Sequence record: ON529858.1 | Length of the DNA stretch: 64,000 nt | Direction: 5' to 3' (one strand) | Translations under genes and position numbers: made by a program | Part shown: positions 1-31,113 of the stretch, in pieces | Numbering within the stretch: position 1 is the stretch's first letter | Layout of the letters: every line of letters begins with the position of its first letter | Notes under the pieces: generated by a model | Seen by the model: only the letters and a program-made list of their open reading frames with translations | What the model was told of the DNA's origin: nothing | Databases searched by the model: none

Positions 1-19
1 CCAGCCTGAACCCCTTCTG

Positions 20-430
20 ATGAGCGCCAAGTCTCCTGTGCATCACGCGGAACTGGCGGCGCTGCGTGACCTCCTGTTGGTGGTCAACGGTCCGTCCCGC
101 GAACTGGACATCCGGATCGCCAACGTCCTGCTGGCCTGGGATCACCCCTGGGTCTACGTCGACGGAAGCTATCAGGCCGGTTGCCGCACCATCCCCGGCT
201 CGCGCCGCGAGGTCGTGACGATCAGCGAATACACCCGCTCGCCGTCGGCCGCCTGCGACCTCGCCCTGGTGGTGAACCCGAAAGGCTTCTTCAAAGCCGT
301 CGAGTGGGCGACGCGCTACGCCGGCGGCCTGAAACTCTACCTGCGCGACGACCATGAATATCCCGCGATCCTGTCGCGCTGCATCTGTCTCTTCCTCGTG
401 AAGGACGCCCTGGAGAACCCTCGTGGCTGA
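20..430 (+). CDS. hypothetical phage protein
   Basis: ORF in tightly overlapping + strand operon, GC3-rich codons. Confidence 0.6.
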   Translation: MSAKSPVHHAELAALRDLLLVVNGPSRELDIRIANVLLAWDHPWVYVDGSYQAGCRTIPGSRREVVTISEYTRSPSAACDLALVVNPKGFFKAVEWATRYAGGLKLYLRDDHEYPAILSRCICLFLVKDALENPRG

Positions 431-746
431 CGAAACCGAACCGACCGTGGTGACCGACGAGTTCCCCTCAACGCCCCTGCCTGAGACGCCGCTTCAGGAG
501 GCCGCCCGCAAAGCGGGCTGGGAGGCCTCCGCCACGGCCGAGCCGCGTGCGACGGGTCTGCGCCCGCCCATGACCGCCGAAGAGCGTCACGAGGCCGCTC
601 TGGCGGCTCTACAGATACTCGTCGACATGCACGCCGCCATCCCGCCCCGCGCGCCCGACGAATGCGTCGTCGAGGTCAGCATCACCGTCGGCGACGTGCG
701 CGCCGCCTTCAACGCCGTTCACGGAATCCGCGCCCATGGCTCGTAA
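423..746 (+). CDS. hypothetical phage protein
   Basis: Overlaps neighbours in operon; GTG start after GGAG. Confidence 0.6.
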   Translation: MADETEPTVVTDEFPSTPLPETPLQEAARKAGWEASATAEPRATGLRPPMTAEERHEAALAALQILVDMHAAIPPRAPDECVVEVSITVGDVRAAFNAVHGIRAHGS

Positions 747-1416
747 ACAACTGCTCTGCTCCCTGGCGTCGATGACGCCCGTCGAGATCGGCGACTACCT
801 CTACCCCGCCGGCGGGCTGGATGGAAAGCTGGTCGAACTGCGCGACGGCGTCGAGGCCGTGATCGAGATCGCGGACGGGCGCCGCTACTGGACGTCCTGG
901 GCCGGCGTCGGCCTGTCCTGGGTCGACCAAGAATGGACGAAGCCCCGCTGGGCGTCGCCCGAGCCGTTCCATCACCGGCACTTCAAGAACCCGCTGATGG
1001 TCGCCGTCCTGCTGCTGCCGGTCTACCAAGGCCACGGGCAACCCGGCCTGCTGACGGTCCAGCGCGGCATCGCGCCCCACATCGGCGGCTGGGCTCTGCC
1101 CGGCGGCTACGTCGAACTGCACGAGTCGATCGAGGCGGCGGCCGTGCGCGAACTGCGCGAAGAGACCGGCATCTACCTGGAGCCGCATCAGGTCTCGCTC
1201 TACCATAGCGCCCCGACCAAGGGCGACACGACCCAGGTCTTCGTCCTGGCGAACACCGGCATCAAGATCAGCGAGGTCCGCGACGCCTTCATGGTCTGTG
1301 AGGAGTCCCTGGCGTTCGGCGACACCGTCAAGGTCGAGGACCGGAACCTCTGCTTTCCGACGCACTGCGACGCCGTCGCCCGCTGGCACGCCGTCCAGGA
1401 TGGATACCGCGCATGA
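736..1416 (+). CDS. Nudix hydrolase with N-terminal extension
   Basis: Nudix box GGYVELHESIEAAAVRELREETGI preceded by WALP. Confidence 0.9.
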   Translation: MARKQLLCSLASMTPVEIGDYLYPAGGLDGKLVELRDGVEAVIEIADGRRYWTSWAGVGLSWVDQEWTKPRWASPEPFHHRHFKNPLMVAVLLLPVYQGHGQPGLLTVQRGIAPHIGGWALPGGYVELHESIEAAAVRELREETGIYLEPHQVSLYHSAPTKGDTTQVFVLANTGIKISEVRDAFMVCEESLAFGDTVKVEDRNLCFPTHCDAVARWHAVQDGYRA

Positions 1417-2348
1417 TCGAGCCCGCCAACTTCGATCCGTCGCACCTCGTCGAAGCCATCGAGACGAACGCTTTCGACTATCACTGCACCCTCTGTGGCG
1501 CCACGGATGCGTCGGCCGACGTGCGGCTGGCGGCGCCGTGTGAGAAGGCCGCCCTGCACCCGGACAAGATGGACGACTTCTCCTTCCTGACCACGCTGGC
1601 GCGCACGCCGGCGATGACCAAGGCGACGAAGGCGCGGCTGCTGAAGGTCGCTGAGCGGATCGCCGGCGCCGACCACATGGTTCCTGGCACGGCCGAGGAC
1701 ATCCAGGCCCTGAAGCGAATCGCCAAGGCGCTCCGCAACGAGGACGCCTTCACGCTCCCGCAGAAGGACCCGGACCTGCTGGAACGGCTCGCCAAGGACA
1801 TCGACATGAACCGGACCTACGGGATGCCGTGGCTGGCGCGTCAGGTCTGGGATGAGCGGCTGGAGGACAAGGAGATCGTCTCGATCCTGCGGTTCCATCC
1901 GCTGATCCAGGACCTGCACATGGTCAACGGCGCCATCCCGCAGCCGACCCATGGCGATGACCTGAAGCTGGTCCAGCGGCTGCTCGTGACCGCCCAGGTC
2001 GCCTCCTGCACCTGCTGCACGAAGACGCCCGAGATCGCCTTCCACGACGAGACCTGCACCTACCGTCTGGTGGTCGAGGCCTCGCACCTGATCACCCTGG
2101 CCCAGGAGAACGACGGCGGCGTGCGCGCACCCTGCCTGGAGACCAAGCCGCCACGCTCGCTCACCATCTGGGGTCCTCTGACCACCGCGCTCAACGACGG
2201 GATCGAACTGCCAATCAACACCCACGGCACGCACCCGGCGGTGGTCGCGGCCGACGCCCTGATCCAGAAGGCGATCGACCAGAAGCTGACCATCCCGGTC
2301 GACTCGGCGGAGGCCGTCGCCTTCCTTCTCGGCCTCAAAGATGCCTGA
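1413..2348 (+). CDS. hypothetical protein (CxxC motifs)
   Basis: ATGA overlap; HCTLC and CTCC motifs. Confidence 0.7.
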   Translation: MIEPANFDPSHLVEAIETNAFDYHCTLCGATDASADVRLAAPCEKAALHPDKMDDFSFLTTLARTPAMTKATKARLLKVAERIAGADHMVPGTAEDIQALKRIAKALRNEDAFTLPQKDPDLLERLAKDIDMNRTYGMPWLARQVWDERLEDKEIVSILRFHPLIQDLHMVNGAIPQPTHGDDLKLVQRLLVTAQVASCTCCTKTPEIAFHDETCTYRLVVEASHLITLAQENDGGVRAPCLETKPPRSLTIWGPLTTALNDGIELPINTHGTHPAVVAADALIQKAIDQKLTIPVDSAEAVAFLLGLKDA

Positions 2349-2565
2349 GATCGTGACCTGCACCGCCAACGGCGAGAAGACCTATGACGTGGCCTTCGAC
2401 GGCGACGAGATCGCCTATGTCGAGGTGGTCCAAGAGCGCGTCGTGGCCGGCAACCCTCAACGGTTTAAGCGCCGCATGTGGACGCGGGGTCGCGGCACAT
2501 TCGGATCGCCTCGTATCGAAGCCGCCAAGCGCGCCGCCCGCGCCGTAAAGGAATCCCATGCCTAA
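2341..2565 (+). CDS. hypothetical protein
   Basis: Overlapping operon gene. Confidence 0.6.
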   Translation: MPEIVTCTANGEKTYDVAFDGDEIAYVEVVQERVVAGNPQRFKRRMWTRGRGTFGSPRIEAAKRAARAVKESHA

Positions 2566-2989
2566 GAAGTCCGACAAGACCCCGCTGAACACCGCTCCGC
2601 GCCGGGGCATGACCATCACCGTTGACACGGCGCCGGCGAAGCGCGAGCCCGCGCCCAAGGTCGACCTGTCGATCCTGACGGACGACGCCAAGGCGATCCT
2701 GGGCTGCTGGTTCGCCATGATGCCGACCCACACCACCAACGGCCTCCAGTTTGGGATGCGCGAACTGAAGCCGACCGCCCGGACCCGCGCCGCGCTGGCC
2801 GAACTGATCGAGAAGAAGATCATCTTCCGGGTGATGGACTCCAGCGTGCCGCCGCCGCCGACCGAGGTCTACAAGCCCCTGTTCGACTGCTTCGAAGCGT
2901 TCGACTGGACCCGCGAAATCCTGGAGGACACCGACCATCCCGAGCGCGCCGCCGCCGTGTCCTGGAAGCTGATGGAGCCCGTCGCCTGA
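2558..2989 (+). CDS. hypothetical protein
   Basis: Overlapping operon gene, AAGGA RBS. Confidence 0.65.
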   Translation: MPKKSDKTPLNTAPRRGMTITVDTAPAKREPAPKVDLSILTDDAKAILGCWFAMMPTHTTNGLQFGMRELKPTARTRAALAELIEKKIIFRVMDSSVPPPPTEVYKPLFDCFEAFDWTREILEDTDHPERAAAVSWKLMEPVA

Positions 2990-3222
2990 TGGTCCCGGTC
3001 CTGTTCTTCATCTGCCTGGGCGTGCTGCTGCTCGCTCTCGCCGTCTGCATCGTCCAGGCCTACGGGACGACCCTGCTGAACGGTCCTGAAGCCGCCCAGC
3101 CTTGGGTCTTCGGCGCCGCCCTCACGGTGCTCACCCTGATCTACCTGATCTGGCATCCCGCCGGCCCGGCCGACTTCGTCCGCAGCCTTCACTTCACCGC
3201 ACCCCCGAGCCCATTCCAGTGA
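2989..3222 (+). CDS. small membrane protein (2 TM)
   Basis: TGATG coupling; two hydrophobic stretches. Confidence 0.65.
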   Translation: MVPVLFFICLGVLLLALAVCIVQAYGTTLLNGPEAAQPWVFGAALTVLTLIYLIWHPAGPADFVRSLHFTAPPSPFQ

Positions 3223-3425
3223 ACCTCTCGAATCACCTCCTGATCTGCGCGTCCCTGGCGCTGATGATCCTGTCGAGCCTCGTGGGGTCCGCGACGCCCA
3301 TGGTGGCGACGACCGACAACATGGCGCGGCTTCGCTTCGCCCTGGTCCTGAAGTCCCTGGCGGTGATCCTGGCGATCGTCGCGGCGGCCTCGGAGAACCA
3401 TCTGCTGGTCTGGCCGATCCGGTGA
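3219..3425 (+). CDS. small membrane protein (2 TM)
   Basis: GTGA overlap; start moved to GTG 3219; hydrophobic. Confidence 0.6.
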   Translation: MNLSNHLLICASLALMILSSLVGSATPMVATTDNMARLRFALVLKSLAVILAIVAAASENHLLVWPIR

Positions 3426-3601
3426 AGGGCCTGTCCGTCGTCGATGTCTGTGTCCTCACGGCGGTGCTCTTCGTCGGCGCCGGGCTCTTTCTCGCGCCTC
3501 CGGGCACGAAGGAGCGACAACGGCTATGGACCGCACTCGGCTGCTACGGCATAGGTTACGTCTGGCTCTCCTACGGCATCATCAAGGCGCTCTTCCCATG
3601 A
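3422..3601 (+). CDS. small membrane protein, 59 aa (not in ORF track)
   Basis: GTGA/ATGA overlaps both sides; MKGLSVVDVCVLTAVLFVGAGLFL...WLSYGIIKALFP. Confidence 0.6.
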   Translation: MKGLSVVDVCVLTAVLFVGAGLFLAPPGTKERQRLWTALGCYGIGYVWLSYGIIKALFP

Positions 3602-4515
3602 CCGACGAAATCCTGATCTCCGGCCTCGACGCTTCGGTGAACTTCGTGCGCCACCTGCCCGGCGGGCGGGGTGCGTTCGAGGCGCGCTACGTCAGCCGCA
3701 AGGACGAATACTTCATCGTCTACCTGTCCAGCCACGCCGGCTGCGACAAGGCCTGCCGCATGTGCCACCTGACCCAGATGGGGCAGACGGACATGACGCC
3801 CGCCACGCTGGAAGACTACCTGTCCCAGGCGCGCCGGGTCATGATGCACTACGCCGAACTGGAGCATGACGGACGCCCGCCGGCGGACTACGTCAACTTC
3901 AACTTCATGGCGCGGGGCGAGCCGTTCGCCAACCCGATCGTCCTGTCGGCCTTCCCGGTCCTGGACAACGACCTGCGTCAGATCGCGGCGGACGCCGGCA
4001 TCGGTCGCGCCCAACTGAACCTGTCGACCATCATGCCGCTGGAGATCGCCGGGCGAGACCTCAAGGAGATCATCGGCCCGAACCGCCGGGGCGTGAACGT
4101 CTACTACTCGCTCTACAGCATGGACAAGGACTTCCGGAAGCGCTGGCTCCCGAAGGCCATGGACCCGATGATCGCCCTGACCATGCTGGCGGAGTGGCAG
4201 ATGTCCGGCGAGGGCGGCGAGGTCGTGCTGCACTGGCCCTTCATCGCCGGCGCCAACGACAGCGAGGAAGACGTCGAGAAGATCATCCGCGCCGTGCGGA
4301 TGGTCGGGCTGAAGACCCGCTTCAACCTCGTGCGCTACAACCCGTTCAGCGCCGCCCAGGGCGTCGAGAGCGACGGCATCATCATGCGCCGCAACCTCCG
4401 CCTGCTGGGCGATGCGTTCGGCGATCCCCGCACCCAAATCGTGCCGCGTGTCGGAGGCGACGTGAAAGCCTCCTGCGGCATGTTCGTCAACGATGGAGAA
4501 CCCGCCCTTGCTTGA
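3598..4515 (+). CDS. RlmN/Cfr-family radical SAM protein
   Basis: SSHAGCDKACRMC (CxxxCxxC), FMARGEP (cf. MGMGEP), NLVRYNP, C-terminal KASCGM (cf. DAACGQ); start at ATG 3598. Confidence 0.88.
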   Translation: MTDEILISGLDASVNFVRHLPGGRGAFEARYVSRKDEYFIVYLSSHAGCDKACRMCHLTQMGQTDMTPATLEDYLSQARRVMMHYAELEHDGRPPADYVNFNFMARGEPFANPIVLSAFPVLDNDLRQIAADAGIGRAQLNLSTIMPLEIAGRDLKEIIGPNRRGVNVYYSLYSMDKDFRKRWLPKAMDPMIALTMLAEWQMSGEGGEVVLHWPFIAGANDSEEDVEKIIRAVRMVGLKTRFNLVRYNPFSAAQGVESDGIIMRRNLRLLGDAFGDPRTQIVPRVGGDVKASCGMFVNDGEPALA

Positions 4516-4954
4516 GTCCTTGAAGTCCGCCCTGTTCGCCATCGTCTGCTTCGGCGCGATCTTCGGCCTCCTGGTCCTGTGGTTCAGGGCAGGGATGCGT
4601 AGAGACGCCGCACGGACGGAATGGATCGTCGCCGGCGAGAAGCTGGTCGATCAGATGGACCGAACCATCACCGGGCCGCGCTACCGCATCGAACGCGCGG
4701 AAGGCTCCGCCACCTGGACCATCTACGTCCGCCGGCACTCCCGCCCCTACGCGCCTGAGAACTTCAAGCGCAGCACCCCGCCTCACGCCCCGGTCCTGGA
4801 GTGGGGGCTGGCCGACTGGTCGGTATCATCCGAGGCCAAGGCGAGGGCGCGGGTCAAGGAGTTCGCCGACCAGGAGCGCGCACGGTGGGCTGAGCCGGTG
4901 GTGACATGCTTCGACGTCTACGGCGGTGAGACCGACTGCGGAGACACCGTCTGA
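4493..4954 (+). CDS. hypothetical protein with N-terminal TM segment
   Basis: ORF track; C-terminus (CFDVYGGETDCGD) resembles that of the next gene; start uncertain. Confidence 0.6.
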   Translation: MENPPLLESLKSALFAIVCFGAIFGLLVLWFRAGMRRDAARTEWIVAGEKLVDQMDRTITGPRYRIERAEGSATWTIYVRRHSRPYAPENFKRSTPPHAPVLEWGLADWSVSSEAKARARVKEFADQERARWAEPVVTCFDVYGGETDCGDTV

Positions 4955-5373
4955 TGGGGTGGCTTGTCTTTTACCTGATCGTCATCCTGACGGTCGGCTG
5001 GATCATCGTTCGCGCCTTCATGCGCGGCTTCGCTCGCGACCGATGGATGACGGCGGGGCGCATGGCGACCACCGAAATGAAGCGGTCGCTCCGGATGGAG
5101 GGCCAGCCTCAGTATCGCATCTTCAGGGAGGACGATGACGACAAATACGCCGTCCAGGGTCGTGCGGTTCAGGGTCCGTGGGAGAGTAGCTGGACCGGCC
5201 CGAAAACGCCGCCCTTCAAGCCTCACGCGGTCTGGCGCACGCTCCATCTGATCGACAACGAGTCCGGCGCCAGGAGCATGATCGCGAAGTTGACCAAGCC
5301 CAAAAACCCCATGAAGATTTGCTTCGACGGCAAAGGCGACACGGTCGAATGTGGAGCGGACGATGGCGAATAG
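4954..5373 (+). CDS. hypothetical protein with N-terminal TM segment
   Basis: TGATG coupling; ends CFDGKGDTVECG, like the previous gene. Confidence 0.65.
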   Translation: MGWLVFYLIVILTVGWIIVRAFMRGFARDRWMTAGRMATTEMKRSLRMEGQPQYRIFREDDDDKYAVQGRAVQGPWESSWTGPKTPPFKPHAVWRTLHLIDNESGARSMIAKLTKPKNPMKICFDGKGDTVECGADDGE

Positions 5374-5656
5374 GGACCCCGAGGTCTGGTATAAGAACTG
5401 CTTCTACGGCCCGGCTGACCGGGGCAAGAAGATGTCGCTGTCGGGCGCCCTGGAGCCGGACCGGTCCGACAGCGATGACGACATCGACGCCCTGCGCAGC
5501 GATGTCGACCGCCTGCGGTCCATGATGGGATCGCTGCTCGCCGCCCTGGTGTCCGAGAAGGTCGTGACGATCAGCTTCGCCAAGGAGATCGCCGGCATCT
5601 ATGCCGACATCACCCCCGACGACCCCGAGATCAAGTGGAAGGATGAAGATGCCTGA
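5363..5656 (+). CDS. hypothetical protein
   Basis: ATG 5363 after GGAG. Confidence 0.6.
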   Translation: MANRDPEVWYKNCFYGPADRGKKMSLSGALEPDRSDSDDDIDALRSDVDRLRSMMGSLLAALVSEKVVTISFAKEIAGIYADITPDDPEIKWKDEDA

Positions 5657-5867
5657 CGCCTGCGAACTGTGCTCGGCACATACCGTGAACACGCGCGTTC
5701 AACCCATGGTCCTTCCCTATGGCGAGGCAGGACCGAATCGGGTGATGCTACGCTTTGACGCGCCGATCACCGAGTGCTCGACCTGCGGCGAAAGCTACAC
5801 GGCCGAGGGCTACGAGGAAGCCGAACTGGCTGCGATCGCCAAACTGAAGGACACCCGAGTTGACTGA
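5649..5867 (+). CDS. stand-alone YgiT/MqsA-type zinc-finger protein
   Basis: CELC...PY.....VML......ECSTCGESY spacing matches the MqsA N-terminal domain; no HTH; ATG 5649. Confidence 0.7.
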   Translation: MPDACELCSAHTVNTRVQPMVLPYGEAGPNRVMLRFDAPITECSTCGESYTAEGYEEAELAAIAKLKDTRVD

Positions 5868-6441
5868 AGACGACGACGACGACCACGTTGAACTGAGCGA
5901 CAGCGAATATCTGTTCGAACTGGCCGAGCGCAGCCTGGGCTTCGTCGGCGCCGGGCACGATGATCACGCCCGCCTGCACGAGATCAGCCGCCGCCTCGCG
6001 CCGCCGCCGGCCGCGAAGTCTTTCGCACCGGTCAACGCCTGGGCCAAGTCGGAGGACCCGGTCGCCAAGATGCTGCGCGACGCGCTGGAGCGGCTGGACC
6101 GCGAGACGCCCGACGTGTTCGGCGCCAAGGTCTTCCTGCACGGCCTGGGCCTCGCCATCGGCCTGATCTTCACCCATCAAGTCGCGGTCCCCGCCTGGGA
6201 GCCGGTCGAAGAAGTCGAGCCCATGGCGAAGGTCTGGTTCGTCCGGCCGGTGGTCCCCGGCAATCCCCTGCGCGGCCCGAAGCAGTTTGACACCTACATC
6301 TCGCGGCGGCCAGACGGACCCGGCTATGCCCTGTCCACCGACGACCGCGACGCCACCCTATTCACCCGCGCCGAAGTCGACCTGATCAAGGCTGCGTTCC
6401 CCGCCAACTGGATTTGGCATTTTGGAGATGAGCATGTCTGA
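5860..6441 (+). CDS. hypothetical protein
   Basis: TTG start overlapping previous stop. Confidence 0.65.
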   Translation: MTEDDDDDHVELSDSEYLFELAERSLGFVGAGHDDHARLHEISRRLAPPPAAKSFAPVNAWAKSEDPVAKMLRDALERLDRETPDVFGAKVFLHGLGLAIGLIFTHQVAVPAWEPVEEVEPMAKVWFVRPVVPGNPLRGPKQFDTYISRRPDGPGYALSTDDRDATLFTRAEVDLIKAAFPANWIWHFGDEHV

Positions 6442-7255
6442 CGAACCCCGCGTTGTCGTGAAGACCGCCGGACTGAAGCCGGCCGACGGGACGTTCCGCG
6501 ACACGGATCACCCGTCCGAGAACTACCTGACCTGCGTCGGGCTGATGGAGACGCCGACCATCACGAAGGTGATGGCCGTCGCCGACAAGATGATGCTCGG
6601 GCAGACCGTCACCGACGACGACATGACGGCCCTCTATGAAGACGGCCTGACCGGCATCGTCGACACCGCGATCGACGCGATCAACATGATCGGGCGCCGC
6701 GATGACGAAATCCACCGGCTGAACGAACTGAACGAGACCGTTTCGAAGATCGCCCTGGACTGGAAGACACCGCCCGTCGCTCTGCACGAGCGGCTTCGCG
6801 ACCTGAACGTCCGCATCGAGCGGATGATCTACCTGCCGCTGGCCTACGCCGATGACGAATACCTGGGCGAGGCCCTGGAGTCGTTCATCGAAGACGACTG
6901 GCCCGACGACGACGACAACGAACTGTGGACCCAGATGCCCGGTCTGCTGGACGCGCTGGGCTCCGAGAACGTGCCGGAGTTCGGCGAGTTCGTCCTGGCG
7001 ATCCGCCGGCTGAACCTGAACGGCTTCCTGATCCAGCTTTCGCGGCCGGTCACGCGGTGGTCCCGCAACGAGGTCGAGAAGGGCGAGGACCCGAACTACG
7101 GCTCGACGTCGTCCTGGGGCCACGCCTACCTGCGCTGGGCCTATGGGGCGACCCTGCCCGAGGCGCTGGAGCGCGCCGCCGAGTGGGCGGAGATGACCGA
7201 GGCCAAGGAGAAGACCGAGGCCAAGGTGTATCCCAAGCGCGAGGCCGTCGTCTGA
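6434..7255 (+). CDS. hypothetical protein
   Basis: ATG 6434 after GGAG; acidic. Confidence 0.7.
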   Translation: MSDEPRVVVKTAGLKPADGTFRDTDHPSENYLTCVGLMETPTITKVMAVADKMMLGQTVTDDDMTALYEDGLTGIVDTAIDAINMIGRRDDEIHRLNELNETVSKIALDWKTPPVALHERLRDLNVRIERMIYLPLAYADDEYLGEALESFIEDDWPDDDDNELWTQMPGLLDALGSENVPEFGEFVLAIRRLNLNGFLIQLSRPVTRWSRNEVEKGEDPNYGSTSSWGHAYLRWAYGATLPEALERAAEWAEMTEAKEKTEAKVYPKREAVV

Positions 7256-7458
7256 TGGAAGGAGCGGCCAAAGCGAAGTCGGAGTTCGACTTCATCCAGG
7301 GCATCGTCGCCAACCTGGAACGGGACCTGGATACGATGGAGACCGGGCTGACGAAGGCGCAGCGGACGCCCGGCATCTCGCGCCAGATCGACACCATGCG
7401 CGAGCGGGTCACGGTGATGCAACAGTGCTGCGAAGACGGCATCAAGGCGCTGTCATGA
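7255..7458 (+). CDS. hypothetical coiled-coil protein
   Basis: TGATG coupling. Confidence 0.6.
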   Translation: MEGAAKAKSEFDFIQGIVANLERDLDTMETGLTKAQRTPGISRQIDTMRERVTVMQQCCEDGIKALS

Positions 7459-7757
7459 GCGTCGCGATCGTCAAGGCCCTGCGCGCAGCGATGAAGGCGG
7501 CCGGCGAGATCGACATGACCGATCCGAAGGTCCAAGCGGCGCTGAAGACCCTCTACAACGACAAGGCCACGGGCCGTGTCATGGGGCCGATCTACGATCA
7601 GCTTCGCCGGGGCGAGCACGCCGCCGGGCGCAACCGCCTGAACGCCCGCTTCCAGCGGATCGGGCCGCGCACGTCGCTCTGGACCGCTGGGCCGTTCCGC
7701 TTCCGCGCCGATCCGAACGTGCCTGATCTCGGCATCACGAATCGGCAACTGCCATGA
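7455..7757 (+). CDS. hypothetical protein
   Basis: ATGA overlap. Confidence 0.6.
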   Translation: MSVAIVKALRAAMKAAGEIDMTDPKVQAALKTLYNDKATGRVMGPIYDQLRRGEHAAGRNRLNARFQRIGPRTSLWTAGPFRFRADPNVPDLGITNRQLP

Positions 7758-8032
7758 GAGCCCTGAAGCCCCTCCAGGAAGGCCGGACGTTCGAGGAATA
7801 CCGGGCGATCAAACAGAAGTCGTGGGACGCCTATGCGTGCTACCTGCCCTTCCGCGCCGACATCGACGACTGGACGCCGGGCGAGCCGCTACTGTTCCTG
7901 GCGGCCCGCCCGATGATGCACTACCGGATGCTCCCGCTGAAGAGCGGCAAGTGGCGGTTCGGCTTCCGCCGCCGGTCCGACCGCGACCGCTTCGTCACGC
8001 TCTACAAGGCGCGGGGGGCGAAGCCGTCGTGA
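7754..8032 (+). CDS. hypothetical protein
   Basis: ATGA overlap. Confidence 0.6.
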   Translation: MRALKPLQEGRTFEEYRAIKQKSWDAYACYLPFRADIDDWTPGEPLLFLAARPMMHYRMLPLKSGKWRFGFRRRSDRDRFVTLYKARGAKPS

Positions 8033-8241
8033 GCGATGATCCGCACCGTGACGACGTCCGCCGGCTGGCGAACCTCCTGTTCTGCCGGGTCGCGGCGAAG
8101 AGGATCAGCGAGGGGTGCGCGCTGCGCTCCCTTGAAGGCTACGTCACGGCGCCGGCGTTCGCGCTCAAGGACCGCCGGGCGCTGATCGAAGACGCATACG
8201 CCGTCCACCACCTGCCCTCGCCCTACGAGGTCCCCGCGTGA
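8029..8241 (+). CDS. hypothetical protein
   Basis: GTGA overlap; start moved to 8029. Confidence 0.55.
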   Translation: MSDDPHRDDVRRLANLLFCRVAAKRISEGCALRSLEGYVTAPAFALKDRRALIEDAYAVHHLPSPYEVPA

Positions 8242-8636
8242 TCATTCCCTACCCGCTCAACCTGGGGCCGGCCATCGTGTTCGAGCAGCACATGATCCGC
8301 ACCCTGTCGACCGAGCGCTACGAGCGCAAGAAGGCGGCCCTGCGCGCGCTTAAGGACCGGGCCAAGGCGAAGGTCATGGCGGCGCGCCAGGGCCGGCCCT
8401 GGGCTGAAGTGCTCGCGGCCCAGGACGAATACAAGGTCTGGGCGGAGCGGCTGGAGCGGTTCACCACCATCTCGTCGATGCTGCACTCGGGCGCCGAGAC
8501 CGGCTGGGGAGAGAGCGCCCCACGAGTTGCGGGTATTCGCTACCGGGCCGCCAAGCGCGCCGGCGGGCGCATCATCAAACCTCTGCCACGTCGGCTGACG
8601 TCGGCGTCCATCCCAGCCCTGAGTTTCGGTTCATGA
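8238..8636 (+). CDS. hypothetical protein
   Basis: GTGA overlap. Confidence 0.6.
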   Translation: MIIPYPLNLGPAIVFEQHMIRTLSTERYERKKAALRALKDRAKAKVMAARQGRPWAEVLAAQDEYKVWAERLERFTTISSMLHSGAETGWGESAPRVAGIRYRAAKRAGGRIIKPLPRRLTSASIPALSFGS

Positions 8637-8902
8637 CCACCTATAGCAAAGAGCGCAACTGCGAACACGTCGAGATCAGACTGTGGTCGCCGGGCGAGAG
8701 CGAAGAGGGTCTGTGGGGCTTCGACACGATGGAGGGTCGAGACGCTGACGCGCGCGGCGAGCCCGGCCCGTTCTGGCGCCGCGTGCGCCCCGCGCACCTC
8801 CCCCCGCCCAGCCTCGAATACCAAGTCACCCGCGCCTACCTCGCTGGCGCCGACATGCAGCAGGTGCTCGACACCGTCCGCGCCGAAGGAACCGTCCAAT
8901 GA
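8633..8902 (+). CDS. hypothetical protein
   Basis: ATGA overlap. Confidence 0.6.
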   Translation: MTTYSKERNCEHVEIRLWSPGESEEGLWGFDTMEGRDADARGEPGPFWRRVRPAHLPPPSLEYQVTRAYLAGADMQQVLDTVRAEGTVQ

Positions 8903-9552
8903 TCATGCTCCGCCCCTTCGACCTCGCCACTCTGCGGCTCTACAACCGGCCCGGCCGCTTCTACCACACCGCGCACCACGTCCTGGAACTGCTGGAACTG
9001 CACGAGACCGGGATGACGCGCGGCGTCCACGTCCCCGGCTACATCCGGCCGAACTTCGGCATGTATGACCCGGCGCTGATCTCGGCGATCGTCGCCCACG
9101 ACTGCGTCTACAAGCCGGGCGCGCCGAAGGGTCAGAACGAAACCGCCAGCGTCCAGGCGTGGCGCGACATGGTCCGGGCATCCCCGCAGGGCGTTGCGGC
9201 CGAATGGGACACGGCGGTCGAGAAGATCATCATGGCGACGGTCGATCACATCCCGCCGGCGCCGAGCAGCGAAACGTCCATCATCGTCCACGATGCGATC
9301 AAGCACATGATCGACCTGGATATGTCGGTGCTGGCGGCCGACCCGGCGGAGTTCGAGCAGAACACCGAGAACGTGCGCCTGGAGGCGAACTACGGCCTGA
9401 CGCTCGGCATCGCCTGGATGGATTTCAAGCGCGCCCGCAACGTCTTCTTCCAGTCGGTGCTCGACCAGCCGTCAATCTTCTTCACGCCGCAGTTTCATGT
9501 CGCGCTGGAAGAGAAGGCCCGCCACAACCTGCGCACCGCGATCGCCGGATGA
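8899..9552 (+). CDS. HD-superfamily metal-dependent phosphohydrolase
   Basis: RFYHTAHHV, IVAHDCVY, IDLDMSVL motifs. Confidence 0.8.
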   Translation: MIMLRPFDLATLRLYNRPGRFYHTAHHVLELLELHETGMTRGVHVPGYIRPNFGMYDPALISAIVAHDCVYKPGAPKGQNETASVQAWRDMVRASPQGVAAEWDTAVEKIIMATVDHIPPAPSSETSIIVHDAIKHMIDLDMSVLAADPAEFEQNTENVRLEANYGLTLGIAWMDFKRARNVFFQSVLDQPSIFFTPQFHVALEEKARHNLRTAIAG

Positions 9553-24503: not shown

Positions 24504-24671
24504 GTGATAGGCTCCTGAGATGCGCCGGGTAAGTCCGGACATCCACAACCTAGCGGGCAGGTCCTAACAAAGTCCTAACGTCCGAATCTTTTCTCGACTG
24601 CCGGCCGTTAACGATTCGTTAGGACTTTGGGGCTAGGGTGGCTTCATCGCAAACCACTGATGGAGTCCCCC

Positions 24672-25541
24672 ATGACCGCCCGCAAGCCCGCCGCCGCCCT
24701 CACAAATCCCTCCCATAAGGTCGTCGGGCCGGACGGGACGGAGTTCTTTCTGATCCGCCGCAAGGGCGCCCGCCTGCGCATCAAAATCCTCTTCGCCGCG
24801 AACGGTTTCGCGGCGGGCGAGGTCAGCGAGGGTTGGGGACCGACCGGCGCCGATGACGTCCTGATGGGGCATTGGACCGGCCCGCTGGGCTTCCACTTCG
24901 GTTACAACGTCATCCGCCAACTGCCCCAGGGCACGCATTGCGTCGAGATCGGTCGCGAGACCGGCGAGGCGAGCCTTCATGACTATCAGACCGACATCCT
25001 GTATAACGGCGAGGTCACCAACTTCCCCCTGGTCCGCGCCGGGTTCAACGTCGGGCGTTTCGGGCGCAAGGGCCTGCCGGTCACCCGGCCCCAGATCGCC
25101 GAGGCCCGCGCCGTCACCCTCGCCCATAAGGCCGCCCTGATCGACGGGACCTATCGCCGCGACGACGGCCCGATGATCAAGAACACGGCGCCGGACGACG
25201 GCGGCTATCGCCCGACCTATGTCCGCGCCGAGGGCTCGCCCGTCCCCGCCGACCTGCTGGCGGAGTTTGTCGCCGACTGTGACCGCCTGCTGGCCTATCT
25301 GGACTTTCTGGAGACCCTGCCGCCCCTGCCCGAGCGTCCCCGGACCTCCCCGGCGCCGGAAACTCAACTGTCCTGGCTGCGCACCCACGCCCGCTATGAG
25401 CGCGGCGAGAACCTGCGCGCCTATCTGCTGGGCGTGCTGGAGTCCGGGATGAATGACCCGGCCGCCTATGAGGCGGCCCGCGCCGCTGACACCCAGGCGC
25501 ACAACGCCCGCGTCGCCCAGGCGAGAAAATCGGCGGCGTAA
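24672..25541 (+). CDS. early hypothetical protein (cassette)
   Basis: GGAG RBS, ATG 24672; TAA stop lies inside the next junction element. Confidence 0.7.
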   Translation: MTARKPAAALTNPSHKVVGPDGTEFFLIRRKGARLRIKILFAANGFAAGEVSEGWGPTGADDVLMGHWTGPLGFHFGYNVIRQLPQGTHCVEIGRETGEASLHDYQTDILYNGEVTNFPLVRAGFNVGRFGRKGLPVTRPQIAEARAVTLAHKAALIDGTYRRDDGPMIKNTAPDDGGYRPTYVRAEGSPVPADLLAEFVADCDRLLAYLDFLETLPPLPERPRTSPAPETQLSWLRTHARYERGENLRAYLLGVLESGMNDPAAYEAARAADTQAHNARVAQARKSAA

Positions 25542-25602
25542 ACCTCTCGTTAAGACCTCCCCCGTATAAGGGGGAGGTCACCACTGAGAAGGAGTTCTCG
25601 CC

Positions 25603-25986
25603 ATGCCTCTCCCCGCCCACCTCTTCGCCTCCGATGACGGCGGCCTGTATGACACCCGCTCGCCGGACTGGTCTAAGGGCAAGCCCCTGCGCACCGGCTA
25701 CCAGGGCGCCGCCGCCCAGATCGAAACCCTCGCCCAGGTCAAGGCCGCGCTGCGCGCCGGGGGCTTCACCTTCCCCGGCGCCTACCCCCTGTATTTCGTC
25801 ACCCGCGACGGCTGCGCCCTCTCGTTTGACGCGGTCCGCGCCGAGTTCGCCGAGGTCTGCGAGGATTTCCTGGCGGACGTTTCCACCGGCTGGCGGATCA
25901 CCGGTTGCACCGTCAACTATGAGGACTCGGACCTGACGTGTGAACACACGGGCGAGAAGATTCCGGCCGCATACAGCGACGAGTAA
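25603..25986 (+). CDS. early hypothetical protein (cassette)
   Basis: AAGGAG RBS; FPGAYPLYFVTRDG...VNYED motif typical of phage hypotheticals. Confidence 0.75.
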   Translation: MPLPAHLFASDDGGLYDTRSPDWSKGKPLRTGYQGAAAQIETLAQVKAALRAGGFTFPGAYPLYFVTRDGCALSFDAVRAEFAEVCEDFLADVSTGWRITGCTVNYEDSDLTCEHTGEKIPAAYSDE

Positions 25987-26049
25987 CGATCCGTTAAGAC
26001 CTCCCCCGTATAAGGGGGAGGTCACCACCGGCAAGAGAAGGAACCCCGA

Positions 26050-26610
26050 ATGCCCGAGACCGTCACCCAGGCCGAGGCCGCCACCGTTCCCGAATACGCG
26101 GAACACGCTGAGCCGCCCGCCTACGCCGTCGCCGTCTGGACTGATGACGTGATCACCAATCACGGCGGCGACCTGCCCCTGTGGGGCCTGGACGTGCCCG
26201 TGCCCGCCATCGGCGCCGACATCGTCGTGACGATCAACCGTTGCGGCCTCGCCTACGTCACCGGCTATTTCGTGCAAGATGGCTGGCTGGGCGTGCTCTG
26301 CACCCTGCGCAACCCGCCGGAATGGCATGTGAAGCAGAACAAGGGTGATCCCAAGGGCCACGCCTTCGCCCCTGAGTTCCGCCCGGCCGTAGCCGCCGAC
26401 CTCGCCGACCCGCCGGTCGAGACGGGCGTCGCCCGCGCCGTCCGGCTGGGCTACACGGTCGAGTCGACCACCGATGAGGCGGACGGCGTGCCGATCTTCC
26501 GCTACGTCCGGCCGAACGGCGAGCCCGATTCCGAATGGCTGTCGAGCCTCGCCAAAATCTGGGAAGGCGCCGGGTCGGATTCTTTTCTTTGGGAAATGGA
26601 CCACGGGTAA
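26050..26610 (+). CDS. early hypothetical protein (cassette)
   Basis: AAGGA RBS; stop inside junction. Confidence 0.7.
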   Translation: MPETVTQAEAATVPEYAEHAEPPAYAVAVWTDDVITNHGGDLPLWGLDVPVPAIGADIVVTINRCGLAYVTGYFVQDGWLGVLCTLRNPPEWHVKQNKGDPKGHAFAPEFRPAVAADLADPPVETGVARAVRLGYTVESTTDEADGVPIFRYVRPNGEPDSEWLSSLAKIWEGAGSDSFLWEMDHG

Positions 26611-26671
26611 CCTCTTGTTAAGACCTTGCCGGTAGGTTGGCTTCATCAACCACCGGCAAGGAGCCAACCCC

Positions 26672-27031
26672 ATGCGATCCACCCTTTCCAATCTGGTCAT
26701 CGCCCTCAAGACCGCGATCGCCGACAACCGCCGCCTGCCCCGCCCGGCCGATCCGGTCGAGGCCGCTGTCATCGACGGCGTCGGCGCGCTTCAGGCCGAG
26801 GCCCTGGAGAAGGCCGAGGGCCTGCTGGCGGGCCTCGCCTATGAGATCGAGATCGCCCAGGCGGGCGCCCTCATCGGCCTGCTCCGCCTCGACACCCCCT
26901 GCCCGATCAAGGCGGACGCCCAGGCCAAAGCCATCCGCGCCGCCCTCCTGCCCGACGGGATCGAGGCGACCCTCTACGCGGTCGAGATCAACAAAAGCCG
27001 GGTGATCGCTGTCGCTCAATACCCCCGGTAA
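26672..27031 (+). CDS. early hypothetical protein (cassette)
   Basis: AAGGAG RBS; stop inside junction. Confidence 0.7.
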   Translation: MRSTLSNLVIALKTAIADNRRLPRPADPVEAAVIDGVGALQAEALEKAEGLLAGLAYEIEIAQAGALIGLLRLDTPCPIKADAQAKAIRAALLPDGIEATLYAVEINKSRVIAVAQYPR

Positions 27032-27096
27032 CGATCCGTTAAGACCTCCCCCGTATAAGGGGGAGGTCACCACCGTTTGAGAAGGAACCCGCCCAG

Positions 27097-27462
27097 ATGA
27101 GCAAGATCACGATTGAGGAAATCGAAAGCTGGACCGCCGAGGTCGAGCGCCCGCGCCAGACGCTGGAGGTCATTTTCCAAACGCTGGGCTATGACAACGG
27201 GACCAAACGAGTCGACGCCTATGTGATCGTCAAGCGCCCAGGCGGCTACGGTCGCGAGGCGGGCGTCGCCCGTGTCGTCCACGCCAGCGGCTGCTACACC
27301 TACGGGCTGGCCCTGATGTCGCTGGAGCGCCAAATGCGCGCCGCCCGCTTCGCCCCCGCCGCCCAGGCCCTGGTCGAGGGCTTCGCCGCCCAGGCCCGGC
27401 GCCAGGGGATGGACCGAACCGAGTTTCCGAAAAGCGTCACCCTCATTCCGACCGAGCGGTAA
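27097..27462 (+). CDS. early hypothetical protein (cassette)
   Basis: AAGGA RBS; stop inside junction. Confidence 0.7.
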   Translation: MSKITIEEIESWTAEVERPRQTLEVIFQTLGYDNGTKRVDAYVIVKRPGGYGREAGVARVVHASGCYTYGLALMSLERQMRAARFAPAAQALVEGFAAQARRQGMDRTEFPKSVTLIPTER

Positions 27463-27524
27463 CGGTCTGTTAAGATTTGGCCTGTAGGGTCTGATCATCA
27501 ACCCCGGACAAGGAGTCCCCGCCC

Positions 27525-27818
27525 ATGACTAAGCCCGCCAAGCCCCGCAAGCTGACCCGCGCCGAACTGGCCCGCAAGGTGCTCGAACTGGAGGGACAAC
27601 TGGCGTCGTCCTATCACTTCGCCACCCTCGAACTGCACAAGGCGGGCGACAACCTCATGGCGTCCGGCGTGCTCATCTCCCTGACCGCCCTAGGCGGGCG
27701 CGAGATCATCAAGCCCGTGGTGATCCGCGACGGCCTGAGCGCCGCCACCATCGCCGCCCTGCGCGCCGATATGGTGCGCAGCTATGAACTGGCGACCTCT
27801 TTTAAGCCCAAGGCGTAA
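27525..27818 (+). CDS. early hypothetical protein (cassette)
   Basis: AAGGAG RBS; stop inside junction. Confidence 0.7.
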   Translation: MTKPAKPRKLTRAELARKVLELEGQLASSYHFATLELHKAGDNLMASGVLISLTALGGREIIKPVVIRDGLSAATIAALRADMVRSYELATSFKPKA

Positions 27819-27880
27819 CCCTTCGTTAAGACCTCGCCTGTAGGGTGAGGTCATCAACCGCTGGACAAGGAGTCCCCCGA

Positions 27881-28435
27881 ATGCCGACCGCCAAACAAAC
27901 CGCCCAGGCCATCGCCCTGACCCCCTCGACGGGCGAGGCCGTGGCGATGATCCTTCACGCGCTCGACATCGGCCGTCTGTATTTTCAGCGCGAGGTCGAG
28001 GCGACCGACTCGCTGTCGAATAAGGAACTGGCCCAGGTCCGGCTCGACACATTCGAACGCGCCTCGATCATCGCCCGTGAATCCGGCGTGCTCATCACCG
28101 CTGAAGGCGAGAGCGTCGCGGCCATTCTCGACGATCTTTTCAACGCCATGCCTACCCCCGGAACCGACAAGCTGTCAAAGCCGTGGAACCGCGCGCTGAA
28201 GCAAGCCCGCCGCCCGCGCTACCGCTTCAAAGCCGGGACCGGGAGCGCCACCGTGACCGATACGCTTAAGGGCGTCTCCGCCACCACCCGCCACCCCGGA
28301 CCGGTCGCGGCGGCGCGCGAGGCCTTCGCCAATACCGACTCGGGCGCCCACGTCACCCCGGCCGGGGTCGGGGTCTGCGGACTGGATGAGGACAAGGCCC
28401 GCTCATTCCTCGCCACCGCTGAGCGCGGCCGGTGA
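27881..28435 (+). CDS. early hypothetical protein
   Basis: AAGGAG RBS, ATG 27881. Confidence 0.7.
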   Translation: MPTAKQTAQAIALTPSTGEAVAMILHALDIGRLYFQREVEATDSLSNKELAQVRLDTFERASIIARESGVLITAEGESVAAILDDLFNAMPTPGTDKLSKPWNRALKQARRPRYRFKAGTGSATVTDTLKGVSATTRHPGPVAAAREAFANTDSGAHVTPAGVGVCGLDEDKARSFLATAERGR

Positions 28436-28728
28436 GGGCCGGTCAAGTCAAGGTCGCGGTCCCCCTCTCGTTTGGGGCCTGCGGCTATGTCTGGCGCCCG
28501 AACAAAACCGCCGCCGGGATGACGAAAACCGACGCCCGGCGCGGTCAACGGCGCGGCCCAGGCGAGGGCGTCGGGCTCAAGCTGGCGGTGCGCGGGACCA
28601 CCGACGCCCTGGATATGGCCCTGGTTTTCTGCATCACCCGCCGAAACCCGGACTATCTGTGTCTGAACAAATCCGGCAAGGCCCGGCTGGCGCGCCTGAG
28701 AAAACGCCGCGCCGTAACCCTTCGTTAA
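28432..28728 (+). CDS. early hypothetical basic protein
   Basis: GTGA overlap; stop is the second half-site of the junction. Confidence 0.55.
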   Translation: MRAGQVKVAVPLSFGACGYVWRPNKTAAGMTKTDARRGQRRGPGEGVGLKLAVRGTTDALDMALVFCITRRNPDYLCLNKSGKARLARLRKRRAVTLR

Positions 28729-28778
28729 GACCTTGCCGGTAGGTTGGGCTCATCAACCACCGGCAAGGAGCCGCGCCG

Positions 28779-28895
28779 ATGAAACCGACCCGCAACCCCG
28801 CCGCGAAGGCCCTGGCCTCCGCCGCCTACCGTCAACAGGTCGTCAAGCCCCGCAAGGGTCGCGGCGCCTACTCTCGAAAGGGAAACCGCCCATGA
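28779..28895 (+). CDS. ArfA-like 38-aa peptide (not in ORF track)
   Basis: MKPTRNPAAKALASAAYRQQVVKPRKGRGAYSRKGNRP; own promoter, AAGGAG RBS, ATGA overlap with next gene. Confidence 0.75.
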   Translation: MKPTRNPAAKALASAAYRQQVVKPRKGRGAYSRKGNRP

Positions 28896-29374
28896 CCGCC
28901 CTCGACACTGTCAACACCTCGTTTTTCTTCGTCGTCCTGCGCGACGCCCAGGGCGTCCACCTCGCCACCGAAACCGTCTGGTGCCCGCCCGGCTCGAAAC
29001 CCGCCGACATCATCGGCGACGCCTGCTCTTTCTTCCAAGTGGACGAAAACGGCGCCTATGACGACGACGTGATCGCCGCCGGTGTCATCGACCTGTTCGG
29101 CCCCTTCGATCAAGGTTCGGCCCTGACCGTCAAGGTCGCCCGCCCGGACGGCGACGACTTCGCCGACTTCCAGATCGTCCCCGAGACCACCGCCGAACCT
29201 TTCGACTATATGGGCCAGATCATGGCCTATGAGGCGGGCGAACTGGACGACGACGACGTCGACACCCTGTTCCAATATCTGGTCGACACCGGCCTCGCCT
29301 GGAGCCTGCAAGGCGCCTATGGGCGCACCGCCCAGGCCCTGGCCGCCGCCGGTCGAATCACCCTCCCCGAGTAA
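28892..29374 (+). CDS. early hypothetical protein (two-domain)
   Basis: ATG 28892; C-terminal IMAYEAGEL...FQYLVDTGLAWSLQGAYGR domain common in phages. Confidence 0.7.
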   Translation: MTALDTVNTSFFFVVLRDAQGVHLATETVWCPPGSKPADIIGDACSFFQVDENGAYDDDVIAAGVIDLFGPFDQGSALTVKVARPDGDDFADFQIVPETTAEPFDYMGQIMAYEAGELDDDDVDTLFQYLVDTGLAWSLQGAYGRTAQALAAAGRITLPE

Positions 29375-29435
29375 CGAACCGTTAAGACCTCCCCCGTATA
29401 AGGGGGAGGTCACCCACCGAGAAGGAACCCAGATC

Positions 29436-30152
29436 ATGGCCGCTGGAGCCACAAAAGAACAGATTGCCCGCGCCACCCGCACGGCGCTGCAAAAGATCGC
29501 CAAGGCGTCCGGCGGGACCTATACCGCCGCGACCACAAAGACCCGCGCTTTCGCCAGCGGGACCACGAACGACGGCCTGCGCTGGATCGCCAACGTCGGG
29601 AGCGGCAACGCCTCGAACGGTCAAACCTTCCTGAGCCTGAACATTTCCGTCAACGGATCGTTTGGCGAAGCCATCACCCGCACCGGCTATTTTGAAGGCG
29701 ACGTGACCGTCGCGGGCGTCTGCCTGTTGTTCCGCCTGATCAACGGCTATCCCCTCGAACTGGACGGCTCGCCCGGCGACTTCCGCCTGCTGCTGGCGGC
29801 GCCCGGCGTCTCGAACTGGTTCGCCGACCGCTACGCCCTGACCTTCCGGGGCGACGGTTTCGACGTGCTGGACAAGGCCCGCAAAATGGTTCGGACCTTC
29901 ACCGCCGCCGAGGCCGATCAAGAGGCCCGCCGCCTCGCCCTGGCCTTCCGTTCGGACCTGCGCGCCGAGACGATGCCGACCCACTATGACGCGGAAACCT
30001 ACGCCCGCGTCCGGGCTTCTGAGGCCGCCTTGTCGCAACGTCGCGGCGCCGGGCTGGACGCATGGGGCGACGACCGCCTCGCCGTCTATCCCGACGGCTG
30101 GACCGGCGCCCTGACCGACTGGAGGCTGGCCCATGGCCCCCGTGAGAACTGA
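29436..30152 (+). CDS. early hypothetical protein
   Basis: AAGGA RBS, ATG 29436. Confidence 0.7.
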   Translation: MAAGATKEQIARATRTALQKIAKASGGTYTAATTKTRAFASGTTNDGLRWIANVGSGNASNGQTFLSLNISVNGSFGEAITRTGYFEGDVTVAGVCLLFRLINGYPLELDGSPGDFRLLLAAPGVSNWFADRYALTFRGDGFDVLDKARKMVRTFTAAEADQEARRLALAFRSDLRAETMPTHYDAETYARVRASEAALSQRRGAGLDAWGDDRLAVYPDGWTGALTDWRLAHGPREN

Positions 30153-30309
30153 CGGCCTCGTGCCGCTGGAGGTCTGCGCCTCCGCCCTCGAACTCGCCAA
30201 GCGCGATGTCGAGGCGCGGCTGGCGCGTGACCCGAACGCCCACGACGCCGACGTCCTGCGCAGCCAGCGCGACACCTACGCCCGCGCCCTGAGCGTGGCC
30301 TATTCCTGA
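30133..30309 (+). CDS. early hypothetical protein, 58 aa (not in ORF track)
   Basis: GGAGG RBS; MAPVRTDGLVPLEVC... Confidence 0.5.
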   Translation: MAPVRTDGLVPLEVCASALELAKRDVEARLARDPNAHDADVLRSQRDTYARALSVAYS

Positions 30310-30398
30310 AAAAATCTCGACTGCCGGCGCTGCGGTAACTTCTCGTTAAGACCTCTCCCGTATGGTCTCAATATCAACCCCGCCAAGGAGACCACCGA

Positions 30399-31051: not shown

Positions 31052-31113
31052 CCCTTCGTTAAGACCTCGCCTGTAGGGTGAGGTCATCAACCACCGGACA
31101 AGGAGTCCACGCC

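Follow-up and report, generated by a model that had tools for sequence, protein, structure and literature searches.

The window analysed here is a stretch of 64,000 nucleotides that matches, at 100% identity, bases 62001-126000 of Brevundimonas phage vB_BgoS-Bajun (ON529858.1), a 207 kb jumbo phage of the Dolichocephalovirinae. On its forward strand lies BAJUN_01320, annotated in the record as 'methyltransferase'. The product is a short relative of the radical S-adenosylmethionine (SAM) enzymes RlmN and Cfr, in which a tyrosine, Tyr42, occupies the place of the cysteine that resolves the covalent enzyme-RNA intermediate. The gene sits in a long co-directional block of small genes, most of them hypothetical. 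A longer open reading frame (ORF) can be read from position 3526; the relatives start at the position equivalent to 3598. The coordinates of the gene, its motifs and its immediate neighbours within the window are collected in Table 1.

BAJUN_01320 is a distant homologue of RlmN and Cfr, with a similarity well above chance. The NCBIfam profiles for RlmN (TIGR00048), Cfr (TIGR04432) and the RlmN paralogue group NF011034 matched the protein with E values of 1.5e-10, 1.2e-8 and 8.8e-8, respectively, and the scores of 40.6, 34.7 and 31.3 bits all fell far below the curated cut-offs of 290, 550 and 422. The RlmN and Cfr chains of the PDB were found by phmmer at E 6e-6 to 1e-4, and BLASTP aligned the protein with E. 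coli RlmN at 23% identity over 283 residues. Homology begins at about residue 84-104 of RlmN, and the protein has 305 residues as compared with 384 in RlmN. A Pfam scan found neither the RlmN_N domain (PF21016, HhH2) nor any other domain in it, in agreement with the shorter N-terminus seen in the first-pass annotation of this sequence. The general radical SAM family PF04055 also gave no match for BAJUN_01320, although many members of its family do match. The protein also gave a full-length profile match to PHROG 27142 ('Fe-S-cluster redox domain-containing'), with an E value of 6.4e-102 over residues 8-297 and profile positions 11-299 of 300.

The AlphaFold2 model of BAJUN_01320, built from an input of 99 relatives, had a predicted local distance difference test (pLDDT) score of 93.2 and a predicted template modelling (pTM) score of 0.91. 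DSSP assigned strands to residues 2-7, 14-19, 26-35 and 38-43 of the modelled N-terminus. The predicted structure has the beta-sheet extension, the radical SAM barrel and the C-terminal loop that characterise the RlmN/Cfr fold. When the model was compared with the PDB by Foldseek, the top matches were to RlmN only (3RFA, 5HR7 and 6FZ6; E ~3e-13, TM score 0.74-0.76), and other radical SAM folds all appeared at E>2e-6. The top Swiss-Prot fold matches were all RlmN or 'probable RNA methyltransferase' entries. Among them was the PA1839-type 'Probable RNA methyltransferase' (NF011034 / PRK14464; E ~1e-15), an uncharacterised RlmN paralogue compared with BAJUN_01320 here by score and fold. Among the ESM Atlas structural matches was a cluster of Bacillota proteins of 491 residues, in which a cytidine/tRNA-adenosine deaminase-type domain (dCMP_cyt_deam_1, MafB19-deam) is joined to an RlmN-like part (TM score by query 0.84).

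RlmN and Cfr are, to our knowledge, the only characterised class A radical SAM methylases, and a ping-pong mechanism with two cysteines is regarded as defining for them. According to the published work, the second cysteine deprotonates the cross-linked radical intermediate at its sp3 carbon, which leads to fragmentation of the C-S bond, and the RlmN C118A/S and Cfr C105A/S mutants stay cross-linked to RNA. The first-pass annotation had cited the E. coli RlmN motif (LCVSSQVGC) and the cross-linking of the C118 mutants, in both cases correctly; C118 lies seven residues ahead of C125. In three independent alignments (phmmer against the PDB RlmN and Cfr chains, BLASTP against E. coli RlmN, and MAFFT), Tyr42 stood opposite E. 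coli RlmN C118 and Cfr C105, seven residues ahead of the first cluster cysteine. In the same alignments C293 stood opposite RlmN C355 and Cfr C338. The early observation that the methyl-carrier cysteine is kept while a tyrosine replaces the resolving one is thereby borne out. Residues 41-56 translate as VYLSSHAGCDKACRMC and residues 290-295 as KASCGM. The protein contains exactly four cysteines (49, 53, 56 and 293), so that there is no substitute resolving cysteine in cis; the possibility raised at the outset, that another cysteine fills the resolving position, found no candidate at the sequence level.

Table 1. Coordinates of BAJUN_01320, its motifs and adjoining ORFs in the 64,000-nucleotide window (aa, amino acids)
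Feature	Position	Strand	Description
Upstream ORF, 59 aa	3422..3601	+	Stop overlaps the BAJUN_01320 start (ATGA)
BAJUN_01320	3598..4515	+	Coding sequence, 305 aa; short RlmN/Cfr-like radical SAM enzyme, Tyr family, PHROG 27142
Residues 1-40	3598..3717	+	Beta-strand extension ahead of the radical SAM barrel; aligns with RlmN ~84-117; includes E28 (= RlmN E105)
Tyr42 codon (TAC)	3721..3723	+	Position of RlmN C118 / Cfr C105, the proton-abstracting, cross-link-resolving Cys
CX3CX2C (C49, C53, C56)	3742..3765	+	Ligands of the radical SAM [4Fe-4S] cluster
M104-A-R-G107-E108-P109	3907..3924	+	Met176 equivalent and GEP SAM-binding motif, as in RlmN/Cfr
Tyr173 in 'SLY'	4114..4116	+	His in RlmN, Cfr and the Cys-keeping sister family ('SLH', RlmN H235)
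N243-L-V-R-Y-N248	4324..4341	+	N243 aligns with Cfr N288 (target-nucleotide phosphate binder); N248 aligns with RlmN N312
K290-A-S-C293-G-M-F296	4465..4485	+	C-terminal loop; methyl-carrier C293, codon 4474-4476 (= RlmN C355 / Cfr C338)
Downstream predicted membrane protein, 153 aa	4493..4954	+	23-nt overlap with the BAJUN_01320 3' end

Other residues of the catalytic core are shared with RlmN. The hallmarks of the radical SAM superfamily, C49/C53/C56 and G107-E108-P109, are present in the protein and invariant in its family. The residues in common with RlmN comprise E28 (E105 in RlmN), the three cluster cysteines, M104 (M176), G107-E108, N220-D221, N248 (N312) and C293 (C355); for M176 of RlmN, a role in stabilising the thiyl radical on Cys355 has been considered in published work. 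Like E. coli RlmN (3RFA, 5HR7), which forms m2A2503 in 23S rRNA and m2A37 in tRNA, BAJUN_01320 has a beta-extension and a partial triosephosphate isomerase (TIM) barrel. Unlike RlmN, it has Tyr in place of C118, Tyr in place of H235, and has lost the HhH2 domain of ~80 residues. Of the two cysteines conserved in class A methylases it retains the methyl carrier, C293, and has Tyr42 where the second one should be. Its sequence shows BAJUN_01320 to be a descendant of the RlmN/Cfr class. Neither RlmN nor Cfr is a suitable annotation for it, since the second cysteine and the N-terminal domain are missing and the scores lie below the curated profile cut-offs.

The substitution is a property of a whole, large family. 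A word-indexed search, cut at E<=0.001, brought up 1998 relatives, and an exhaustive profile search of 1.84 billion representatives yielded 420 family clusters at E<=1e-30 and 1062 at E<=1e-10. The cluster motif was present in 267 of the 268 sequences retrieved, and all 267, which include 150 representatives of 50%-identity clusters, have Tyr seven residues ahead of it. The alignment proposed in the first-pass annotation as a check on Tyr conservation therefore came out without a single exception. The family consensus reads x-Y-L-S-S-H-x-G-C-x-x-A-C-R-x-C around the cluster and S-C-G-(M/T/C/Q)-F at the C-terminus, and only four cysteine columns are conserved in the family alignment. The cluster ligands, the SAM-motif residues and the methyl-carrier cysteine do not vary among relatives that are about 40-60% identical. 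Alongside Tyr42 there is a second family-specific swap in the active site, with His235 of the RlmN 'SLH' motif changed to Tyr173. In longer family members, a check for domain fusions returned HNH or nothing informative.

A sister family of short phage proteins allowed a comparison. The uncharacterised family of gp170 of the Tunturiibacter phage Tunturi_5 (L049:2929-3924 in our locus set; sister set P0269-P0381) resembles the Tyr family in its length (~295-340 residues), its lack of an N-terminal domain, H57, H212 and the S-C-G-x-F loop, and it also occurs on large phage contigs, of up to 503 kb. Unlike the Tyr family, it keeps the Cys and the SLH His; gp170 is 26% identical to the Bajun protein. 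At the resolving position 105 of its 111 sequences have Cys and 6 have Val, and Tyr was never seen, which argues that Tyr is a fixed, selected state. Between the two families Y42/C is coupled with Y173/H, and also with Y169/Y170, N243, R284 and V285. In the maximum-likelihood tree the Tyr family stood apart from E. coli RlmN, Tunturi gp170 and gene_104 of Klebsiella phage 05F01, with a support of 98 in the Shimodaira-Hasegawa-like approximate likelihood ratio test (SH-aLRT). The Klebsiella phage gene_104 (L048:2872-3798) has Val at the C118 position, a Cys three residues on (LSCSHGC) and a C-terminal SCGMF, and adjoins an anaerobic ribonucleotide reductase gene. Full-text literature searches (RlmN, Cfr, radical SAM, jumbo/huge phage, 201phi2-1, AbiEii, Bajun) found no publication on the Tyr family; a Cas4 paper that mentions RlmN was set aside as irrelevant. 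Judged by sequence, the Tyr family is a distinct sister family of RlmN/Cfr that is undescribed in the literature searched.

The active-site environment offers clues to the substrate. We mapped the Cfr-rRNA contacts of a 2026 cryo-electron microscopy preprint onto the pairwise alignment of Cfr and BAJUN_01320, where the loop alignments are uncertain at ~20% identity. As in S. aureus Cfr (9P0P), which forms m8A2503 in 23S rRNA, the catalytic-core architecture and an NLxRYNP-type motif are found. The Cfr residues that hold the target and its 3' neighbour phosphate, S151, S153, S187 and N288, align with the conserved N100, N102, N141 and N243. Unlike Cfr, the protein has Tyr for C105 and no N-terminal domain, and the basic residues that hold helix 90 are not kept, with A138/Q139 opposite R184/R185 and G206/E207 opposite R249/K250. 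The HhH2 N-terminal domain is important for RNA binding in Cfr and RlmN. Because this domain and the helix-gripping basic patches are missing while the nucleotide-holding residues are kept, the substrate is probably not A2503 of 23S rRNA recognised in the canonical manner, and the alignment suggests a nucleotide that is presented differently from 23S rRNA. Net charge and isoelectric point (pI) were considered as a proxy for RNA binding and discarded as not discriminating (median pI 6.4 for the family and 6.6 for RlmN).

The genes of the Tyr family are carried mainly by mobile elements, that is, jumbo or huge phages, megaplasmids and genomic islands. Among isolate genomes, the family-level matches (41-59% identity) came from jumbo phages only. 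These comprise eight Brevundimonas phages, the Caulobacter phages CcrColossus and CcrPW, and the Pseudomonas phages 201phi2-1 (gp434, 'hypothetical'), Phabio, Psa21, D6, Viktualia and RVTF4. The IMG/VR loci lie mostly on contigs of 115-624 kb, two 'genome' contigs of 389 kb and 546 kb have phage gene content, and the ESM Atlas clusters of this family are ~75% viral. Public sequencing runs gave weak partial matches only, in wastewater samples, with a share of at most 0.14. A family restricted to phages was nevertheless rejected, as 75 loci turned up in the GTDB species genomes, including some on complete bacterial chromosomes, megaplasmids and islands, with the Tyr and S-C-G-M-F present in all those checked. 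The copies in Planctomycetota and Myxococcota form one derived clade (SH-aLRT 99). Outside this clade, the cellular copies lie on ~1-Mb Pseudomonas megaplasmids, on a Paracoccus plasmid, in an Achromobacter region resembling a conjugative element, or near transfer-messenger RNA (tmRNA) genes, and many further ones are on phage-like contigs of metagenome-assembled genomes.

The gene context of the relatives differs between clades. In 36 loci of the Planctomycetota/Myxococcota clade, the radical SAM gene stands head-to-head with an operon that encodes an AbiEii-family nucleotidyltransferase (PADLOC E 3e-49), a protein with TIGR02996 and leucine-rich repeats (LRR) and a Sulfotransfer_3-like protein. 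An example is L127:6840-10909 on a Rubripirellula chromosome, with others at L078, L092 and L086. The sulfotransferase-like P-loop partner is 50-57% identical across the two phyla. This four-gene cassette may represent a system, so far uncharacterised, for immunity or nucleotide modification. No PADLOC model matched the radical SAM protein itself, phage or bacterial, the AbiEii match being to the neighbouring bacterial gene alone, and none of the operon partners was found in the phage loci or the Bajun window. In the actinobacteria Wenjunlia (L129:8255-12460) and Nocardia (L065), the gene stands in an operon-like string, with a PNP_UDP_1 nucleoside phosphorylase and a P-loop kinase-like protein ahead of it and MazG and GrpB/CoaE after it, in which the start of mazG overlaps the radical SAM gene, a translationally coupled arrangement. 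A tmRNA gene lies 3.4 kb from the radical SAM gene in the Nocardia locus, which suggests that this locus is a genomic island.

In eight related loci (L011, L021, L023, L024, L040, L062, L063 and L104), tRNA genes lie within ~3 kb of the gene. By our own grouping these loci represent at least 6 lineages. In L104 a tRNA-Val gene starts 3 nt past the stop codon. Such proximity may be a hint to the substrate. The gene was also seen within or beside tRNA arrays in several unrelated phage or phage-like contigs, L028 among them in addition to the eight.

In the Bajun window itself, the ATGA overlap with the upstream ORF suggests co-transcription and translational coupling of BAJUN_01320. Just downstream, the ORFs at 4493-4954 and 4954-5373 (both on the forward strand) are tandem paralogues with 28% identity (E 6e-11), each with a hydrophobic N-terminal segment; they matched no Pfam family and were not found in the related loci. 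A NUDIX hydrolase gene, annotated as 8-oxo-dGTP diphosphatase, lies 2 kb upstream at 736-1416 on the forward strand (Pfam NUDIX E 6.5e-17), and this was the sole domain that Pfam detected among the window neighbours. Except for one distant NUDIX match, none of these neighbours recurred in related loci. A promoter and terminator scan of window positions 1-9000 gave no signal above background. Farther along, between successive small genes at 24609-32998 (forward strand), there are at least 10 copies of a ~55-nt element composed of TAAC-N5/6-GTTAAGACCTC, a GC-rich hairpin (e.g. CCTCCCCCGTATAAGGGGGAGG), TCA(T)CAACC and then a GGAG ribosome-binding site. The element resembles a phage promoter or a signal for RNA processing, present in repeated form, and no copy occurs near BAJUN_01320. 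At 33686-33765 (forward strand), ~5 tandem copies of the 16-nt unit AGSGATTTGATCGCCS form an array resembling iterons or a set of binding sites.

What, then, would an RlmN-like enzyme do with a tyrosine in place of the resolving cysteine? We tentatively favour the view that BAJUN_01320 is an active variant of the class A type of radical SAM C-methylase, in which Tyr42 replaces the cysteine as a relay and the substrate is a non-canonical nucleotide, with RNA favoured. In such an enzyme, one SAM would methylate C293 and a second SAM would be cleaved at the C49/C53/C56 cluster. The resulting 5'-deoxyadenosyl radical would convert methyl-Cys293 to a methylene radical, which would add to an sp2 carbon of the nucleotide base. 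Tyr42, probably together with Tyr173, would stand in for the Cys118 base as a proton acceptor or hydrogen-atom relay, so that the adduct could be resolved by this route and the enzyme could turn over. The favoured substrate would be a nucleotide in a tRNA-like RNA loop, with a free nucleotide the next most likely. Since the cluster, SAM and methyl-Cys residues are kept, the Tyr is fixed and the His has been swapped for Tyr as well, a working methyl synthase is the most economical reading, and the invariance of the Tyr argues against a simple loss of function. Together with the upkeep of the gene in bacterial chromosomes, it also speaks for a positive part of the Tyr in catalysis. The AbiEii-family nucleotidyltransferase as a bacterial partner and the nearby tRNA genes were counted in favour of this proposal. 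Of the three explanations put forward in the first-pass annotation, a different substrate or chemistry is the one supported by this combination of an invariant Tyr42, the Tyr173 swap, the loss of the HhH2 domain and basic patches, and the retained catalytic residues; its other two fared less well and are taken up below.

Several observations weigh against an active methylase that uses Tyr42 in this way. We know of no enzyme in which Tyr substitutes for the resolving cysteine. A change to serine at this position, in RlmN C118S and Cfr C105S, leaves the adduct unresolved. The target carbon in Cfr lies only 3.6 Å away from the C-beta of residue 105, so that the canonical adenine site would be too tight for a Tyr side chain if the substrate did not adopt a different pose. 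The genomic evidence is also divided. The actinobacterial neighbours (nucleoside phosphorylase, kinase-like P-loop protein, MazG and GrpB) point to free nucleotides, no tRNA gene was found in the 64-kb Bajun window, and one phage clade has SbcCD upstream of the gene in a coupled arrangement, which makes the context ambiguous. When the ORFs of 43 loci (the phage loci and the window) were clustered, no neighbour was common across clades and only clade-specific synteny was seen.

The alternative that survives best, possible though appreciably less probable, keeps the same chemistry and changes the substrate to a mononucleotide, a nucleoside or another small molecule, with the product serving as a precursor, a signal or an antimetabolite. 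The missing HhH2 domain and the lost rRNA-helix contacts fit this idea, as do the actinobacterial string, the nucleotidyltransferase and P-loop sulfotransferase-like partners in Planctomycetota and Myxococcota, and the NUDIX gene upstream in the window. However, the two actinobacterial loci are close relatives and amount to about one observation, and the NUDIX neighbour is not conserved elsewhere. The characterised relatives all act on RNA. A polynucleotide is also suggested by the contacts of Cfr to the 3' neighbour phosphate, since three of the four residues involved have conserved polar counterparts (N100, N102 and N141).

It is unlikely that the protein is not a methylase at all and uses C293 and Tyr42 as a hydrogen-atom or radical relay for another reaction on nucleic acid, such as repair, lyase chemistry or isomerisation. 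Spore photoproduct lyase, a radical SAM enzyme that acts on nucleic acid and is not a methylase, has a conserved Cys and Tyr in a hydrogen-atom relay; the likeness is a mechanistic analogy only, as no specific sequence or fold relation to BAJUN_01320 was detected. A conserved Cys and Tyr pair at the active site is what such a relay would need, the family-specific Y169/Y170 and Y173 could lengthen it, and some clades adjoin DNA-recombination genes such as SbcCD. On the other side, the RlmN-type S-C-G loop and the equivalents of Met176 and E105, which belong to methyl-Cys chemistry, are conserved, and the nearest relatives in both sequence and fold are exclusively RlmN and Cfr.

The second explanation of the first-pass annotation was a 'suicide' enzyme of a single turnover. 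Here the methylene bridge between C293 and the base would never be broken, and the protein would serve as a covalent trap of host tRNA or rRNA, either for host shut-off by the phage or as an abortive-infection effector in the AbiEii-linked cassette. The cross-linked mutants of RlmN and Cfr are a direct precedent, no other cysteine is available in cis, and the bacterial clade does stand head-to-head with a toxin-type nucleotidyltransferase. Yet any residue other than Cys would serve this purpose, as is seen from the sister-family members with Val, and selection for cross-linking alone would hardly keep Tyr in 267 of 267 sequences together with a second Tyr swap. In addition, a protein consumed stoichiometrically would probably achieve little against tRNA or rRNA, which are abundant; complete bacterial chromosomes carry the gene stably; and the radical SAM protein is not covered by any PADLOC model. 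The precedent stands, and we consider the explanation itself improbable.

We hold it equally improbable that BAJUN_01320 is an ordinary RlmN or Cfr orthologue that methylates A2503 of 23S rRNA at C2 or C8, or A37 of tRNA. The best matches are indeed RlmN and Cfr, the NL(V/I)RYNP motif is Cfr-like and the source annotations carry these names, but the profile scores lie far under the curated cut-offs, the second cysteine, the N-terminal domain and the Cfr rRNA-helix contacts are missing, and in the tree the family groups separately from E. coli RlmN. The last of the three initial explanations was a mimic, which would be a decoy without catalytic activity that binds RNA or a host factor. The loss of a residue essential in RlmN and Cfr could be taken for decay. 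The conservation of all the catalytic motifs makes this explanation very unlikely, the cluster ligands, SAM-motif residues and methyl carrier being invariant at an identity level that indicates an active enzyme under purifying selection.

The Tyr family presents a natural experiment on how the cross-link between a protein and its substrate is resolved, and the Tyr swap probably marks a new substrate or product as well. In its boldest form, which we regard as unlikely as a whole, the family would be a new mechanistic subclass of the radical SAM methyl synthases, in which Tyr in place of the resolving Cys allows either a new resolution chemistry or the deliberate covalent capture of a tRNA-like substrate. 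The bacterial members would then act with a nucleotidyltransferase of the AbiEii/MenT type in an immunity-like cassette, and the solo enzyme of jumbo phages and megaplasmids would modify tRNA or nucleotides for counter-defence or host take-over. The names now given to family members in the databases, '23S rRNA (adenine2503-C2)-methyltransferase' and 'Cfr family', over-call rRNA methylation and antibiotic resistance in phage and plasmid genomes. Given its frequency in jumbo and huge phages and megaplasmids, and its link to an AbiEii-type nucleotidyltransferase in bacteria, the family may bear on conflicts between mobile elements and their hosts at the level of tRNA or nucleotides.

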